Assembly (NCBI RefSeq): GCF_044704955.1
Contig: NC_091999.1
Location: forward strand, 26,908,001 to 26,972,000
Reading direction: 5' to 3'
DNA from: Pristiophorus japonicus
Lineage: Eukaryota
Length of the DNA stretch: 64,000 nt
The notes beneath the pieces are model-generated. The model was given only the letters and a program-made list of their open reading frames with translations. It did not search any database and was not told the origin of the DNA. The first letter of the stretch is position 1, and each line of letters opens with the position of its first letter. Positions 7,020 through 46,130 of this stretch are shown one piece after another. Position numbers and translations under genes: made by a program.

Positions 7020-8220
7020 TTTAATAACATTCGGTGATATTATTGCATTATAATCGGTTGGTTAATAGTAATTTAATTCAACTACAACCTGAATAAGTTA
7101 ATTATGTAGATGGCAACTAGTTACATTTCACATATTAATATACCAGCATCGTCAAAATAGATTAATAGTTGAATATATAATTATCACTTCAATAATTGTG
7201 ATGTTAAAATACCTTTCAATGACTTCTGATGTCTAAACCCGTCCTGTTCTTTGCCTACCTACTGTTTAAAAACAGTTTCAAAATACATATCTTGTTTGGA
7301 TTCGATCAGAAACCTGCTGCTGCCCGCTGTCACCGATATTAAACATTGTAGAAACGCCAAACAGCTTCACTAATTCTAGGTATTCTGAGTAACACAGGCA
7401 CAAACTCTCCTCAGCAGATCAATACTAAATCACATCGCTGAGGGGCGGAATCCATCGACAGAACCTTTCATGGAGCAGATCCGTAATTCTATAAACCCTT
7501 TCAGCAGAATCAAATGTATCATTGCAAAAAAATCTCATTACACAATCACCGAACCCGCCTCACACTGAGATATCTAATGATTGAATTCAACAGAAATATA
7601 AAATACTGACAGAGAATTGTGATTCGACGGATTATGTTAAATACGTTAATTTTGATATTATAGCGTATTTCAATAATAATTGGTGATATTACTACGTTAT
7701 AATAATGTTAATTTAAATGTGTTCCAGCTGGAAATATGTTAATTTTTCAGTTCTTAATTACAGCTCACGTATTGAATCTGATCATTTGGGAACATTCGGT
7801 CAGTAGATGACAATGTAATTTTCATGAAAAAACTAAAAGTCCTTTAGGTTATTTACTGATCGCTAAGCTTTCTGTTTTGTGCCTACAATGTTCTCTTAAA
7901 CACATTCAAACACAATGTTTGCATTCGATCAGAAAAACTGCAGCAATCAGAGGTCACCAAGATTAAACATTGCAGAAACGTCAAACAGTGTAATAATCAT
8001 AAAGTATTTAAAGTAACCTAGACACACAGTCTCGGCAGCAAATAAATACCAAATCACATCAACAACATTTTCTGTGGAGAAACAGTTGAATTCTATAATC
8101 ACTTTGCAGCAGAATCACATTGATAATTGCAAAAAATCTCAAAACAAAATCCACCGAACCCAAGTTTCAGTGAACGAAATAATTATTAAAATAAACAAAA
8201 ATATAAAATAAAGACACAAA
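7020..8220. repeat. Diverged ~650-bp tandem duplication in the J-CH1 intron
   Basis: Paired blocks such as TTCGATCAGAAA, GTCACC.A.ATTAAACATTG.AGAAACG.CAAACAG, CAGCAGAATCA and ATTGCAAAAAA.TCTCA at ~7300-7550 and ~7925-8160. Confidence 0.8.
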
Positions 8221-8254
8221 TAAAAGTGTTACTGAATCAGTGAATGCTCCTTAC

Positions 8255-8304
8255 CTGCAGTCACCGTCACCATGGTCCCTTGTCCCCAGTAGCCCATTGC
8301 GTAA
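8255..8304 (-). pseudogene. IgH J segment (probably D2-J pre-joined)
   Basis: T TAC GCA ATG GGC TAC TGG GGA CAA GGG ACC ATG GTG ACG GTG ACT GCA G|GTAAG = YAMGYWGQGTMVTVTA, with the WGxG motif and a canonical donor. Confidence 0.93.
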
Positions 8305-8332
8305 CACAGTGAGACACGTTGTGTCAAATACT
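8305..8332 (+). promoter_or_regulatory. 12-bp-spacer recombination signal sequence 5' of the (D)J segment
   Basis: CACAGTG (8305-8311) + 12 nt AGACACGTTGTG + TCAAATACT (8324-8332). No nonamer at 22/23 spacing. Confidence 0.88.
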
Positions 8333-8538
8333 CAGGCGGACTGTTAACTGTAAAATACAGAGATTAAATTCCACCCAGCTCTAAAAACCCGATTCTGACT
8401 GTCGTAAGAGTGAATCAGCGAGATATTTCATTTTGTAGCGTTCATTATATTTACAAAAATGATTGGAATACTTCTCAAGCATCTGTGCATGTTCAACATG
8501 GCAATCAATAGTAATAAAGAAGAAAACTGTTATACATT

Positions 8539-8541
<3 letters not shown>

Positions 8542-8570
<29 letters not shown>
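8542..8570. repeat. (TA)n microsatellite between the two RSS
   Basis: Directly visible perfect AT run. Confidence 0.95.
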
Positions 8571-8661
8571 ACTTATTTCTAATTATTTTTATTTAAGCCT
8601 CAGTTCCTTCGACGCTCCTGGCGTGGTAATGGTCGCAGGTTTTAGCAAACTCCCTGTCTGG

Positions 8662-8699
8662 GGTATTTGTATGGAGAGCTCACTCTGTATTGCACCGTG
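8662..8699 (-). promoter_or_regulatory. 22-bp-spacer recombination signal sequence 3' of the VD segment
   Basis: Minus strand CACGGTG + 22 nt CAATACAGAGTGAGCTCTCCAT + ACAAATACC. Confidence 0.9.
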
Positions 8700-9019
8700 A
8701 CCCACTCCCGTAGTCCTTCCTTGCACAGTAATAGATGGTGGTGTCTTCGCTCCTCTTGTTCTTTATGTCCAACGTGAAGATGTTGTTTGAAGTGTCTTTG
8801 GATGCATTAAATCGGCTGTCGATCCCTGGGACGTTATTCTTGCTCGATGGAGTGTAGTAGTAAACCAGCCACTCCAGCCCCTGACCGGGAACCTGGCGGA
8901 CCCAGTTCATGCCATAGCCGCCAAAATCGAACCCGCTGGTTTACAGGTCAGTCTCAGGGAGACTCAGGAAATCCTGGTCTTTGCCTCGGGCTGAGTCAAC
9001 ACCACATCCGACTGGACAC
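8700..9019 (-). pseudogene. IgM VH exon pre-joined to D1 (VD), with a stop and a 1-nt frameshift in FR1
   Basis: tttttacag|GT GTC CAG TCG: VQSDVVLTQPEAKTRIS*VSLRLTC(K) / [74 protein letters not shown] at 8964-8966. One A is missing in TGTAAA(A)CC at ~8940. Confidence 0.93.
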
Positions 9020-9147
9020 CTGTAAAAATAATCAAAATATCCCGAGGATCAATCCTCGGGAAATGATTCCTGACTCTGTAAAATTTCATAGAGAGACTCG
9101 CACTGAGACAGTAACAATGAGAGAATTGGACAATAAAAACTACTCAC

Positions 9148-9193
9148 GGGAAAGTAAAGCCAGCAACAGAACGAAAGCAATCGCCGACCTCAT
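9148..9193 (-). pseudogene. IgH leader exon
   Basis: 46 nt ATG AGG TCG ... TCC C|GTGAGT = MRSAIAFVLLLALLS(R). Phase 1, splices in frame to the V exon across a 128-nt intron. Confidence 0.92.
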
Positions 9194-9279
9194 CCTCCTG
9201 GCAATGTGTGGTGACTGGTTCCAGCAAGAACTCACTGAGCAAACCCACTCCCAGACTGTTGTATTGCGCTCCCAGTGGC

Positions 9280-9382
9280 CGGCAGCTAAATACCTGGGAG
9301 ATGGGGGCGAGGTTAAAGACGCCACCCATTGCTTCCCTGATAGAAGCGGTTTCTGGATCCACGTCACTTCTTCCACATCACC
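9280..9382 (-). promoter_or_regulatory. Putative VH promoter (TATA-like element plus paired CRE/decamer-like motifs)
   Basis: Minus strand GGTGATGTGG (~9373-9382), AGTGACGTGG (9359-9368) and TATTTAG (~9286-9292) upstream of the leader ATG. No ATGCAAAT octamer seen. Confidence 0.5.
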
Positions 9383-10907
9383 AACAGAATGGACTCACAT
9401 CTGGACTGTAAATTAAATCCCTTTATTCCTCACTCTTTCACAGGGGATGTAAATCTTTGAGATTGAATTACATTATCAGGATCTAATGACACGGCCAGTT
9501 TGTGCTTTTACATCTCCCGCTATCTATCCATGCAACTGTACCAATAAAGTATCCCCTATAATCTGAATTGATATCACTCTATGTAACCGAGTGCGGTAGA
9601 TGGGTAATGTGATTCTATTTACAGTGTACTTGGCTGAAGCTACATTTTGTTCTGGAGATGAGATCATACTCCTCACATTATACAATTGTCTCTCACTGCA
9701 TTTCACTAACTGCCCCTGAGTCTGTGACTCTAAGACAGCCGTTTGTAAATTTAGCTGTAAAATAAGTCTGCTTGTCTGATGATTAAGGAGTGAGTTGACG
9801 AAGACACATAAGAAAGTGGGGGCCGCCCGCTTCAGACCAGCGTTTTATGAGAGAAGCTGGTGAATCAGAATCGATAATGTGATCAGCAAACCTTGACATC
9901 CAAATCCTTGCCGCTAACTTTAATAGCGACCGAATGTGTAACAGACACGGGTAACAGGAACACGGTGTATCAGGACATAGTGGTATCTTACAGAATATCA
10001 CAGGAATAAATGCTTCATCTCCAGCAGAAACAGAGATCACAATCTGGGCCTTTCACCACCCACTGGTAGCCGGGCTATGAGAGGGCTTGTTCAGGGATCC
10101 AAATCAGTTCAAGTTACACCGCACCCTGCGCGGCTACTGATCACGAATAATGGAGACATGTGTTTAGACCAGGCTCAAAATTCTGTGAGAATATTAAAGA
10201 AGTGCAGCTGGCACTTCTCTGTGAGAATATTCAAGGCAATTCAACCTGTTTTAGTTACTTTGCGAATCCCACTCATCTCATTACAGTGTGGGGTGAGGAC
10301 ATTAAACGTCTCTCCAGCACTTCATGCTGTACTGAATAAATCGATTGAAAGATTTAGAATGGTCTTTATTTGGAAATAGTTTTCATTAGGTACCGTGTGG
10401 ATCAATTCATTATTTTCAGATCCTGTTTTGTAATATTGTGAGCATGCAATTTACGTAAAATCATTCTTGAGATGTTATACTATGGAAAATGTTTCTTATT
10501 TTAAAAGTTCGACTGAATAATGTAATATTTAAATAGTTAAATACCATATTTCTCTCATTCTTGTTCACGCTAATCTGACCCGCACAATATTTGGCAGTAA
10601 CCCAACCGACTGCCGTCAGCGAGCCTCGAACACCAGTGTCATTTTCAGGAAGCATCTGGGGTTCTGTGCACTCCATCAAAGGCCAGTTTTCTCACTACTG
10701 ACCGCATGCCTGGAAGCCAACTTCAAAACATTTACATTGACAAAAGACCTATTTATATACACATCTACCCAATAACAGAACTGGTGTTAAGTTAAATTTT
10801 TTCGTTGTGTAAATGTGTGTAACTGTTCACATATTGCAGGAAAGGAAATATATGCAAAGTCTCAGACACCATGTCAGTCGCAGCAGTCAGCTGGATTATC
10901 AGTACTG

Positions 10908-11094
10908 NNNNNNNNNNNNNNNNNNNNNNNNNNNNNNNNNNNNNNNNNNNNNNNNNNNNNNNNNNNNNNNNNNNNNNNNNNNNNNNNNNNNNNNNNNNNN
11001 NNNNNNNNNNNNNNNNNNNNNNNNNNNNNNNNNNNNNNNNNNNNNNNNNNNNNNNNNNNNNNNNNNNNNNNNNNNNNNNNNNNNNNNNNNNNNN
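10908..11094. other. Assembly gap (N run)
   Basis: Run of N. Confidence 1.
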
Positions 11095-12850: not shown

Positions 12851-12854
12851 TCTG

Positions 12855-15395
12855 GTGTAATAAAGAGAGAGACAGTGTCGAGGATAATATAAACAGTGAC
12901 AATGCCTGGCGTATTATAAAAAGAGACAGGGTGTCGTGTGACATAAACTGAGACAGTGTCTACTGGAATATAAACAGAGACAGGGTCTAGTGTAATACAA
13001 ACAAAGACAGGGTCTAGTGTAATATAAACAGGGATAGTGTCAGAAGGAATATAAACAAAGATAGTGTCTGGTGTAATGTAAACAGAGACATGGTCTAGTG
13101 TAATATAAACAGAGACAGGGTCTAGTGTAATATAAACATAGAGAGGGTCTAATGTAGTATAAACAGAGACAGTGTCTAGTATTTTATAAAAAGAGACAAG
13201 GTCTAGTGTATTATAAACAGAGACAGCGTCTAGTGTAATATAAACAGGGATAGTGTCTGGAAGAATATAAACAGCGACTGGGTCTTGTGTGATATGAACA
13301 GAGACAGGGTCCAGTGTAATATAAATAGAGACAGGGTCTAGTTTAATATAAAGACGGATAGTGTCAGAAAGAATATAAAAAGAGGCAGTGTCTGGTGTAA
13401 TATAAACAGAGACATGGTCTAGTGTAATATAAACATAGACAGGATCTAGTGTAATACAAACAGAGACAGGGTCTAGTGTAATATAAACAGGGATAGTGTC
13501 AGAAAGAATATAAACAGATGCAATGTCTGGTGTAATATAAACAGAGACATGGTCTAGTGTAATATAAACAGAGACAGGGTCTAGTTTAATATAAACAGAG
13601 ATATAGGGTCGAGTCCAATATAAACAGGGATAGTGTTAAGAAGAATATAGACAGAGACAGTGCCTAGTGTAATATAAACAGAGACAGGGTCTAGTGTATT
13701 ATAAACAGAGACAGGGTGTAGTGTAATATAAACAGGGATAGTGTCTAGTATATTATAAAAAGAGACAAGGTCTAGTGTATTATAAACAGAGACAGCGTCT
13801 AGTGTAATATAAACAGGGATAGTGTCTGGAAGAATATAAACAGCGACAGGGTCTTGTGTGATATGAACAGAGACAGGGTCCAGTGTAATATAAATAGAGA
13901 CAGGGTCTAGTTTAATATAAAGACGGATAGTGTCAGAAAGAATATAAAAAGAGGCAGTGTCTGGTGTAATATAAACAGAGACATGGTCTAGTGTAATATA
14001 AACATAGACAGGGTCTAGTGTAATACAAACAGAGACAGGGTCTAGTGTAATATAAACAGGGATAGTGTCAGAAAGAATATAAACAGAGGCAATGTCTGGT
14101 GTAATATAAACAGAGACATGGTCTAGTGTAATATAAACAGAGACAGGGTCTAGTTTAATATAAGCAGAGATATAGGGTCGAGTCCAATATAAACAGGGAT
14201 AGTGTTAAGAAGAATATAGACAGAGACAGTGCCTAGTGTAATATAAACAGAGACAGGGTCTAGTGTATTATAAACAGAGACAAGGTGTAGTGTAATATAA
14301 ACAGGGATAGTGTCTGGAAGAATATAAACAAAGACAGGGTCTAGTGTAATATAAACAGAGACAGGGTCTTGTGTAATGCAAACAGAGACAGGGTCTAGTG
14401 TAATATAAACAGGGATAGTGTCAGAAAGAATATAAACAGAGGCAGTGTCTGGTGTAATATAAACAGCGACATGGTCTAGTGTAATAAAAACAGAGACAGG
14501 GTCTTGTTTAATATAAACAGAGACTGGTTCGAGTCCAATATAAACAGGGATAGTGTTAAGAAGAATATAGACAGAGTCAGTGTCTAGTGTAATATGAAGA
14601 GAGACAGGGTCTAGTGTAAAATAAACAGAGACAGGATCCAGTTTAATATAAACAGAGACAGGGTCCAATATAATATGAACTGGAAGAGGGTCTAGTGTAA
14701 TGTAAACAGAGGCAAGGTCTAGTTTAATATAAACAGAGACAGTGTCTAGTACAAAATAAACAGAGACAGGGTCTAGTGTAATATAAACAGAGACAGAGTC
14801 TAGTGTAATATAAACAGGGATAGTGTCTGGAAGAATATAAACAGAGACAGTGTCTAGTGTAATATAAACAGAGACAGGGTCTAGTTTAATATAAACAGAA
14901 ACAGGGTCCAGTGTAATTTAAACAGAGACAGGGTCTAGTAGAATATAAACAGAGACAGGGTCTAGACTAATATAAACAGAGACAGTCTCTAGTGTTATAT
15001 GAACTGGGAGCGGGTCTAACGTAATGTAAACAGAGGCAGGGTCTAGTATAATATAAACAGAGACAGGGTCTAGTACAATATAAACAGAGACAGGGTCTAG
15101 TGTAATATAAACTGGGACAGGGTCTAGTGTAATAGAAACAGAGACAGGGTCCAGTGTAATAAAAACAGAGACAGTGTCTACTGTAATATAAACAGAGACA
15201 GGGTGTAGACTAATATAACAGAGACAGTGTCTAGTGTAATATAAACTGGGACAGAGTTGAGTGTAATATAAACAGAGACAGGGTCTAGTACAATATAAGC
15301 AGAGACAGGGACACGGGTAATATAAACAGAGACAGCGTCTCGTGTAATATTAACAGGGACAGGGTCTTAAGAGAGACAGGTTCTAGTGTAATATT
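12855..15395 (+). repeat. 27-bp satellite array
   Basis: Unit GTCTAGTGTAATATAAACAGAGACAGG, roughly 90 copies, with a ~569-bp higher-order duplication. Confidence 0.95.
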
Positions 15396-15529: not shown

Positions 15530-16450
15530 TCAAATTATTCCAGGCATTCTATATGTTTAAATTACTCTGGACCCTGTTTAATTATAACTACATCTGATCA
15601 TCTCTCTTTTCGGATTGCACAAGGCCCTGTCTCAGTTATTACTGCACTAGTCTCGGGATCAATTTTATTTCTGTGGATACTGTCTCAGTTACACTGCACT
15701 AGACCCTGTCTCTGTTTATATTATTCTCGGCTCTGTATCAGTTATCACAGTACTGGACCCTGCGTTATATTACATTAGACCCATTCTCAGTTACTACTGA
15801 ACTAGACGCTGTCTCTGTTTATATGACCGTACACCATGTTTTTGTCAATATTTCACTAGTTCCTGTCTCTCTTTATATTACACTCGACATGTCTCAGTTT
15901 ATATTGCACTAGAAAATGTCAATGTTTCTACTAAAGAGCTCATGTATTAGTTAGTATTAGAGCACGTTATTCTTTGTTATATTATGTTGGACCCTGTCAC
16001 TATTTATATTATACTATCCCCTGTCTCTTTATAATAGATTGGTCCTGTCTCTGGTTATATTACACTAGACCCTGTCTCTGTTTATATTACACTCGACCCT
16101 GTCTCTGTTTATATTATACTAGACTCTGTATTTTTTACATTACACTAGACACGGTCTCTGTTTATATTACACTAGACACTGTCTCTGTTTATATTACACT
16201 AGACCCTGTATTTTTTATATTACACTAGACATTGTCTCTGTTTATATTACACTAGAGCCTTTATTTTCTATATTACACTAGACACTGTCTCTGTTTATAT
16301 TACACTAGGCCCTGTCTCTGTTTATATTACACTAGACGCTGTGTCTTTTTATTTTACACTGGTCCCTGTCATTGTAGATATTACACTATATCATCTCTCT
16401 GTCTATGTTACACTTGGACGTGTCTCGGTTATTACTGCACTAGACCCTGG
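15530..16450 (-). repeat. 27-bp satellite, inverted orientation
   Basis: Unit CCTGTCTCTGTTTATATTACACTAGAC, the reverse complement of the 12855-15395 unit. Most degenerate near 15530. Confidence 0.92.
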
Positions 16451-43954: not shown

Positions 43955-46130
43955 CCTTCCCTCCTCACCACTCCTCTCCTCACCTCTCTCCTCACGTCTC
44001 TCCAATGCTCATCTCCTCTCATCTCCCCTACCTTCTACCCTCCTCTACTCTATTCTCCTCTCCCACCCTCGCCTCTACCCTCTCCTCTCCCCAGTCCTCT
44101 CCTCTAATCCCCTCCCCACTTCACTCCACTTTCATCTCCTCTCGTCTCCTCTCATCACATCCACTCTCCGTTCCACTACTCTCCCCTGCTCTGCTTTCTT
44201 CTCCCCTCTCCTCCCCTACACACTCGTCCCCTCCCTGCTCATCTCTACCCTCCTCTCTCCCCTCGTCTCTCGTTTCCTCGCCTCTCCACTACTCTCCTCC
44301 TCTCGCCTCTCCTCTCCTTCACACTCCTCTCCTCTCCCCTCTGCTCACCTCCTTATCCTTTCATCATCTCTACTCTCCCCTCTCCTCCCCCATCCTCTCC
44401 ACTCGGCTCATCCCTTCACCCATCTACTCCTCTCTCATCTCCACTGCTCTTCTCACCTGTCTTCCCGTTCTCTCCTGTCTACTCTCCTCTCTCCTCTCCC
44501 CTCTCCTCAACTCTCCTCCCCTTTCAGCTGTTCTCCTCAACTCTTTTGTGCCTCATTTTCTCCCCTCTTGCCTACCTTTTCCACGCCTCTACTCCACTAT
44601 TCTCCTCCCTTTCCCTCTCCTCCATTCTCCTCTCAGCTCCTCTGCTTTCTCATCTCCACTCATCTCCCGTCTTCCCCGATCCACCCCTATCCTCACCGAT
44701 CCTCTCCTCTCTCCTGTTTTCAGGTCGCTTCTCACTCCACTCTCCTCTCTCCTCTCCACTCGTCTCCACTCCAATCATCTCGACTCCTCTCCCCTAAATT
44801 CTCCCCTCCTCTCCTCACCCCTCTCCTCTCCTCTTCACCTCTTCTCCCCTTTCATTTTAACTCCTCTCCTCACTTGTGTCGTCTGATGTTCTCCCCTCTC
44901 CTCTCCTCCCCGCTCCTCTCCTTCCCTCTGCTCTCCTGTACCCTCTCCAGTCCACTCCTCTCCTCCCGCTCCTACCCTCTCCTCCCCTCTGCTCTCCTTT
45001 CCTCTACCCTCTTTTCACCTCCTCCTCTCATGCACTGTCTTCTCTCTCCTCTTCTCTCCCCTAACTTCCCCCCCTCTTCTCCACTCACCTTTACTCCCCT
45101 CTCCGTTACCCACTCTTCTATCCTCTCCTGCCCTCTCTTCTAATCTCCTCCCTTGTCCCCTCTCTTGTCCTCTCCTCTCCTCTAATCTACTACCTCCTCT
45201 CTCTACTTTGCTTTCATCTTTTCTCTGCTATCCTTACATCTCTTCTATTCTCCTCTCCATTGCTCGTATCTCCATAGCTCTTCTCTCCTCCACTCTCCTC
45301 TCCACTTCCCCTCTCTTCTCCCCTCTCCTCCCCTCCCTTCTCATCTCTTCTCGCCCCTGCTCTCCCCGCTCTCTTCCTCTCCTCTGAGGGTCTCTCCTCT
45401 GCTCTCCCACTGCCCTTCCCCTCTCCTCTGCTCTACTCTCCTTCTCTCTCATCCTCTCACTTCTCCACTTTTCTCCATTCCTCCTTTCTCTGCTACGCTC
45501 CTCTCCTCCTCTCCCCGCTCCTCTCATCTCTCTTCTGTCCCCTACCTTCTCCCCATCTCTACTCCACTCTCCTGTCCACCCCTCTCCCCTACACTCTCAT
45601 CTCCACTCCCCTCGCCTCTCCACTCCTCTCATCCCTCTCCTCTCCCCTACCTTTTCCTCACCTCTATTCCACTCTCCTCTCCTTCCATCTCCCCTACACT
45701 ATCATCTCCTTTCCCCTCCTCTACTCTCTTCCCCTCTCCTATCTTCTCTTCCCCCCTCTTTTCTCCTCTCCTTTCATCTTATCAACTCTCCTCTGCTTTC
45801 CTCTACTCATCTCTGTTCTGCTCTACTCTCTACTCCCCCTCTCATCTATCCTATCCTCCACTAACCTCCCCTCCCCTTCCTGCTCATCTTCACTCTTTCC
45901 TTCTCCCACCCTCTCCTCTCACCTCCTACCCTCTGCTCTGTTCTGCTGTCTTCTCCACTCAACGCATCTGCTCTCCTCACCTCTGCTCTCCTATTCCCCT
46001 CCTCTCCTCTCCTCCACACTCATCTCCTCTCGTCTACTCCCCTCCCACCTCCTGTCCTCTCTCTTCTCTTCTCCTCACCTCTCTGCTCCTTTCATCTCCA
46101 TTCCTCACCTCCAGTCTCTACATTCCCTGC
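43955..46130. repeat. ~2.2-kb degenerate (CTCCT)n polypyrimidine tract
   Basis: Almost pure C/T on the plus strand. Confidence 0.95.

Follow-up and report, generated by a model that had tools for sequence, protein, structure and literature searches.

The classical evidence that RAG has been active in germ cells, and has reshaped antigen-receptor loci there, comes from the germline-joined antibody genes of cartilaginous fish. IgM clusters joined in the germline as VD1-D2J, VDD-J and VD-J are known from the horned shark (Heterodontus francisci) and the little skate (Lewis and Wu 2000, PMC2193153; PMC5192425), and the forms VD-J, VD-DJ and VDJ were enumerated in 'Fish Immunoglobulins' in 2016 (PMC5192425). 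Somatic VD-DJ intermediates of IgM clusters were described for thymocytes and B cells of the nurse shark (Malecek et al. 2008, PMC2435157).

The IgM cluster of Pristiophorus japonicus considered here, which we read as VD1-[22 signal]...[12 signal]-(D2)J, is close to these systems. With the VD1-D2J clusters of the horned shark and the little skate it shares the cluster type, the fusion of V to D1, the remaining signal pair and probably the fusion of D2 to J, and also the position of the joins at the borders between coding sequence and heptamer, as expected of RAG activity in germ cells. It differs from them in that it belongs to another species, that its D2 is reduced to at most 2-4 bases, that the D2-J step is family-wide and that the cluster is a pseudogene. 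The VD-DJ intermediates of the nurse shark have the same topology, in which only one of the three joins is still outstanding, and the same segment spacing of about 400 bp. However, they are somatic and specific to single cells, while here the form is found in a genome assembly and the 12-signal J occurs also in diverged paralogues. The nurse shark also possesses IgM1gj, which is reportedly a fully germline-joined VDJ gene that is expressed. Like this and other germline-joined VDJ genes, the Pristiophorus cluster is a product of germline joining, but it is half joined and broken, whereas those are fully joined. Finally, the wiring of the TCR beta type (V23 / 12-D-23 / 12-J) follows the same signal logic as the putative parent family of the cluster (V23/12-D1-22/12-J). 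In contrast to TCR beta, this is an IgM cluster, its wiring would be secondary, by loss of D2, and in this copy V and D have already been joined.

The configuration as such has thus already been described, since VD1-D2J is in the literature (PMC2193153, PMC5192425) and the corresponding somatic topology was reported as well (PMC2435157). New are the species, the nearly complete loss of D2, and the second join layered on a family that was already rewired. Another cluster of this layout, which moreover is dead, contributes little alone; its value is that of a dated marker of a presumed second germline join after the loss of D2.

Anatomy of the cluster and its recombination signals

The window, by which we mean the whole 64-kb stretch of DNA that was analysed, contains one cluster of the type L-V...J...Cmu, which is the heavy-chain minilocus for IgM of cartilaginous fish. 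It lies on the minus strand and consists of the following features:

9193-9148, minus strand: leader exon (MRSAIAFVLLLALLS plus a split codon) with a GT donor at 9147; matches the leader of Heterodontus HV01, P0005
9147-9020, minus strand: leader intron, GT...AG
9019-8719, minus strand: V-encoded part of the V exon, ending with YYCAR; Pfam V-set, E 2.5e-12
8718-8700, minus strand: V-D1 junction, the 19 bases AAGGACTACGGGAGTGGGT, composed of junction bases (about AAGG) and D1 (ACTACGGGAGTGGGT)
8699-8662, minus strand: D1 3' signal with heptamer CACGGTG (8699-8693), 22-base spacer (8692-8671) and nonamer ACAAATACC (8670-8662)
8661-8333, minus strand: intervening DNA of the D1-D2 type, 329 bases, with an (AT)n run at 8529-8581
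8332-8305, minus strand: 12-signal of D2 5' origin with nonamer AGTATTTGA (8332-8324), 12-base spacer (8323-8312) and heptamer CACTGTG (8311-8305), adjoining J
8304-8255, minus strand: J coding sequence, 50 bases, YAMGYWGQGTMVTVTA, with a GT splice donor at 8254
1705-1400, minus strand: Cmu1 exon, approximate limits; Pfam C1-set on the piece between its two stops
890-588, minus strand: Cmu2 exon, approximate limits, open frame; Pfam C1-set, E 6.5e-12

The split leader and the V-set VH exon, which resembles shark VH, are those of an IgM minilocus. In the protein search with the V piece, the VH was 62-66% identical to VH of Chiloscyllium, Heterodontus and Scyliorhinus (six matches), and none of the six matches came from Pristiophorus japonicus. 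The distance from J to Cmu1 is about 6.5 kb and the two signals are 381 bases apart. In the IgM clusters of the nurse shark, segments are about 400 bp apart and J is 6.3-6.8 kb away from Cmu1 (PMC2435157). The segment spacing, the single J with its donor, and the C1-set domains of Cmu1 and Cmu2 fit an IgM cluster of a chondrichthyan, of which Cmu3, Cmu4 and the membrane exons are located outside the 64-kb window. No second V or J was detected in the 64-kb window by blastn with the V and J DNA as queries.

The V exon has the 3' end TGTGCAAGG, with TATTACTGTGCAAGG at 8733-8719. No recombination signal follows the V end YYCAR; the 19 bases are found there instead, with approximately 3-5 bases (AAGG) lying between the V end and D1. 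The original prediction had noted exactly this, namely that 19 nt rather than a signal follow YYCAR and that they precede a signal with a 22-base spacer, and the minus-strand anatomy bears it out. The 22-spacer signal is the sole match in 64 kb at no more than 2 mismatches, with 0.07 expected by chance. The 12-spacer signal has a weak nonamer with 3 mismatches, and two matches to it were found in the window versus 0.73 expected. Its heptamer abuts J exactly, and the junction reads heptamer, TT, then ACGCAATGGG. At a spacing of 22/23 bases from the J heptamer no nonamer is present.

Between V and J there are two signal-like heptamers, those of the 22-signal and the 12-signal, and therefore no free D exists in this interval. 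This agrees with the earlier statement that a J with a 12-spacer signal lies about 380 bp away without a free D in between. A hidden D near 8390, indicated by the nonamer-like GGTTTTTAG and a GCTGGGTGG motif, was considered and rejected, since no heptamer is present at either spacing. In summary, the V 23-signal and the D1 5' 12-signal are absent, the V coding end runs into D1, and the D1 3' 22-signal is kept, as in clusters of the VD1-D2J class.

In the J-Cmu1 intron, immediately 3' of J, there is a tandem duplication, diverged and about 610 bases in size (7310-7611 and 7934-8216). Its blocks are 72-78% identical, and the upstream copy is without a J-like remnant. In the Cmu1-Cmu2 intron, a 38-base unit is repeated in 7.8 copies with 78% matches (1026-1323).

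Free D segments in sister clusters

Logan contigs were aligned to the window at 80% likeness, so that paralogues were taken in as well. They came from two runs of Pristiophorus japonicus (organism A, one sample, X1/X3) and from two runs of a related species (organism B). The D1, D2 and J segments of the sisters were read from contig ends of 22-30 letters, not from complete clusters. At several positions the window disagrees with all contigs of organism A, and this sample thus does not simply represent the assembled haplotype.

On the side of the 22-signal, an organism-B contig (X5, loose end 8706) contains a 12-base spacer, CACTGTG and GTACTACAGTGGGT, followed by the 22-signal as in this cluster. 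In detail, GTACTAC, the heptamer CACTGTG, a 12-base spacer and ...TTGT are found in this contig upstream of the 22-signal and the 3' part of the 19 bases. GTACTACAGTGGGT is a free D1 with its own 12-signal, located where the Pristiophorus cluster has its V. The presence of a free D1 in organism B implies that the 19 bases consist of a few junction bases and D1, and the proposal that V is fused to D1 is thereby substantiated.

On the side of the 12-signal, contigs with loose ends at 8301 (X1, X3 and X6) run into a free D2 and not into J. The sequence behind the 12-signal is TTAC+AGTGGGTGG or AGTGGGTGG in organism A and AACTGGGTGG in organism B. The free D2, which in organism A corresponds to TTACAGTGGGTGG, is followed by CACAGCA as its heptamer, then by a spacer of 12 bases and the first part of a nonamer, and the element is thus of the 12-D2-12 type. 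In line with the original prediction, the signal next to J is the 5' signal of D2, as the same signal precedes the free D2 in contigs of both organisms. Both ends of the intervening DNA (8333-8661) are covered by organism-B contigs, in which they are attached to a free D1 or a free D2, while its middle part (8437-8559) is not conserved in organism B.

Sister J segments (X1 at 8297, X5 at 8292 and X5 at 8306) show a heptamer and then a spacer without a nonamer at 12 spacing, as expected of a 22/23 signal. The sister J of organism A starts with ACGGCATGGGC, and the J of this cluster with TT+ACGCAATGGGC. Comparison of the two starts indicates that the J is of full length and that the D2 remnant does not exceed TT, or TTAC if the AC microhomology is counted. 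Thus, the designation D2J holds for the origin of the 12-signal, which comes from D2, but hardly for the coding sequence, in which almost nothing of D2 is left (2-4 bases at most) in front of a complete J.

The arrangement of J and the 12-signal is not restricted to this cluster. In a paralogue contig with 88% identity (8266-8453, 21 differences in 188 bases), J is contiguous with the 12-signal and its upstream DNA, and in a contig with 98% identity and high depth J is likewise contiguous with the 12-signal. In organism A (X1/X3) depth is continuous at the V-D1 junction and at the junction between the 12-signal and J. Organism A shows depth across 8700-8720, but among the contigs listed no named one bridges V-D1 at high identity. 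An organism-B contig that seems to span V-D1 with three small gaps might be an orthologous VD1 join, but the depths suggest more than one contig.

Other joined forms were observed among the contigs. Paralogues with a complete VDJ join that preserves the reading frame are represented by two related sequences in organism A (CARDVGWYSLAEWGQ, CGIDGGWYSLADWGQ) and by one in organism B (contigs at 8288-8724). The CDR3 sequences of the two from organism A are DVGWYSLAE and IDGGWYSLAD. These paralogues look like inherited genes of the IgM1gj kind. In addition, an X1 contig at 8302 contains a D1-like stretch of 17 bases fused to J as here, located behind a 12-signal of the D1 type, which corresponds to a V-DJ germline form.

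Origin of the two joins

In our opinion the cluster probably descends from a canonical V-D1-D2-J cluster, from which two inherited deletional joins of the RAG type produced VD1-[22 signal]...[12 signal]-(D2)J, now dead. We infer the order of the events, RAG as their agent and their germline, not somatic, origin. The older join would have removed D2 together with the original J signal and would have set the 5' 12-signal of D2 on a full-length J, after which only TT (or TTAC) of D2 would have been left, a state common to a cluster family of this genome. Later, in a join specific to this cluster, V would have been fused to D1 with a few junction bases, and the V 23-signal, the D1 12-signal and about 400 bases between them would have been lost. 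The resulting VD1-[22 signal]...[12 signal]-(D2)J would formally be one 12/22 join short of completion. The relative age follows from the 12-signal J being shared with the 88%-identical paralogue, which makes the D2-J join older and family-wide and leaves only the V-D1 join as specific to this cluster. Both joins lie where coding sequence meets heptamer, which is the hallmark of RAG activity in germ cells. The earlier idea of two RAG events fixed in this very cluster needs modification: each join has a real origin as proposed, but the paralogue has the D2-J step as well. Altogether, the original interpretation of the cluster is partly supported.

TT and TTAC are the first bases of the free D2, and with only 2-4 D2 bases left, the product of a coding joint would look the same as that of a hybrid joint or of a plain deletion. 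In the case of a germline hybrid joint, the J coding end would have received the D2 5' 12-signal in exchange, and D2 would have been excised together with the J signal; alternatively, an ordinary deletion would have taken out everything between the start of the D2 coding sequence and that of J. The V-D1 join would be unaffected in both cases. Such events would account for the full-length J with TT alone between it and the heptamer, while a coding joint would need the trimming of 9-11 of the 13 D2 bases and of none from J. Further, the IgH clusters of sharks provide documented cases of hybrid joints in the germline by which signals were swapped (PMC2193153). On the other hand, TT (and TTAC) is the start of the free D2 in both species, which would be expected of a trimmed coding joint with AC microhomology. 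At the sequence level, this match to the D2 start favours a coding joint. Short D segments are often trimmed heavily, which also speaks against a hybrid joint or a deletion. We consider such an origin of the 12-signal on J to be rather improbable.

The 12-signal could also be native to the J of a one-D lineage (V23/12-D-22/12-J, like TCR beta). The cluster would then be a plain VD-J that arose by a single germline event and never had a D2. In favour of this design, J contains no recognisable D2 sequence, and the 12-signal J is found in the diverged paralogue, too. The original prediction had named sister clusters with a 12-signal J as evidence against itself, and taken literally, the 88%-identical paralogue is such a case. 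However, the contigs of both species on this side of the 12-signal lead into a D2 that is free and has a 3' signal of its own, and thus show that the 12-signal is derived from D2. Moreover, sister J signals without a nonamer at 12 spacing are present in the same DNA, and the two-D layout is the general one of elasmobranchs (PMC2435157, PMC5192425). A native one-D design is accordingly given only a slim chance. Even less credit is given to joins that are not inherited, and neither a chimeric assembly nor a somatic origin, from lymphocytes in the tissue that was sequenced, is likely. In favour of somatic joins, the assembly and the runs come from unspecified tissue, and partial rearrangement of IgH clusters, with VD-DJ among the products, takes place in shark thymocytes (PMC2435157). 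But a consensus assembly needs most of the reads, whereas each individual somatic junction would be rare. In addition, both a diverged paralogue and a second data set contain the 12-signal J, the cluster has gathered several defects, and the continuous depth over both junctions in X1/X3 does not fit a chimera or a somatic event.

Returning to two inherited joins, it is tempting to speculate that the genome holds graded inherited states of one IgM cluster family, V-D1-D2-J, V-D1-(D2)J, VD1-(D2)J, V-DJ and VDJ. This cluster would then represent a second, later germline RAG event on a family already rewired in a TCR-beta-like manner. We offer this wider reading tentatively, with slightly more doubt than confidence. 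If it is true, a tree of all states would reveal how many germline RAG events a shark lineage has undergone, in which order and at what rate, and whether further germline joining is more likely in one-D clusters that have been rewired. Combined with the sister forms in the reads, the cluster could help to reconstruct the frequency and order of germline joins.

Decay of the cluster and other features of the window

The V contains an in-frame TGA (8966-8964) in FR1, at the site of a conserved glycine, and a frameshift of one base, with the base missing at 8941/8940 between the Lys and Thr codons (K/TSGF). Indeed, in tblastn with shark VH proteins, FR1 is matched in one frame and TSGFDF...YYCAR in another. 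Some paralogue contigs carry an extra base at about this site (8939/8940), but most of the organism-A depth does not, and the frameshift is therefore no obvious slip of the assembly. Cmu1 is interrupted twice by a stop codon, by TAG at 1627-1625 and by TGA at 1513-1511. The V stop, the V frameshift and the two Cmu1 stops make the cluster a pseudogene, and the open reading frames of a functional IgM cluster are not present. The suggestion of a light-chain-like locus that needs only one 12/22 join for its function is thus not tenable, as the stops in V and Cmu1 and the V frameshift prevent function. The cluster is a fossil of germline recombinase activity and no working gene.

Upstream of the leader (9194-9500) no canonical octamer ATGCAAAT was detected; the best candidate is a 7/8 match in reverse orientation about 260 bases upstream. 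The lack of the octamer may be one more sign of the cluster's decay.

Outside the cluster, the window contains an N run at 10908-11094 and a minisatellite with 93 copies of a 27-base unit (12851-15367). Approximately 600 bases further on, at 15765-16449, an array of its unit is found in inverted orientation. A pyrimidine-rich simple repeat of the CTCCT type, 2.1 kb in length and with a GC skew of -0.84, is located at 43961-46111.
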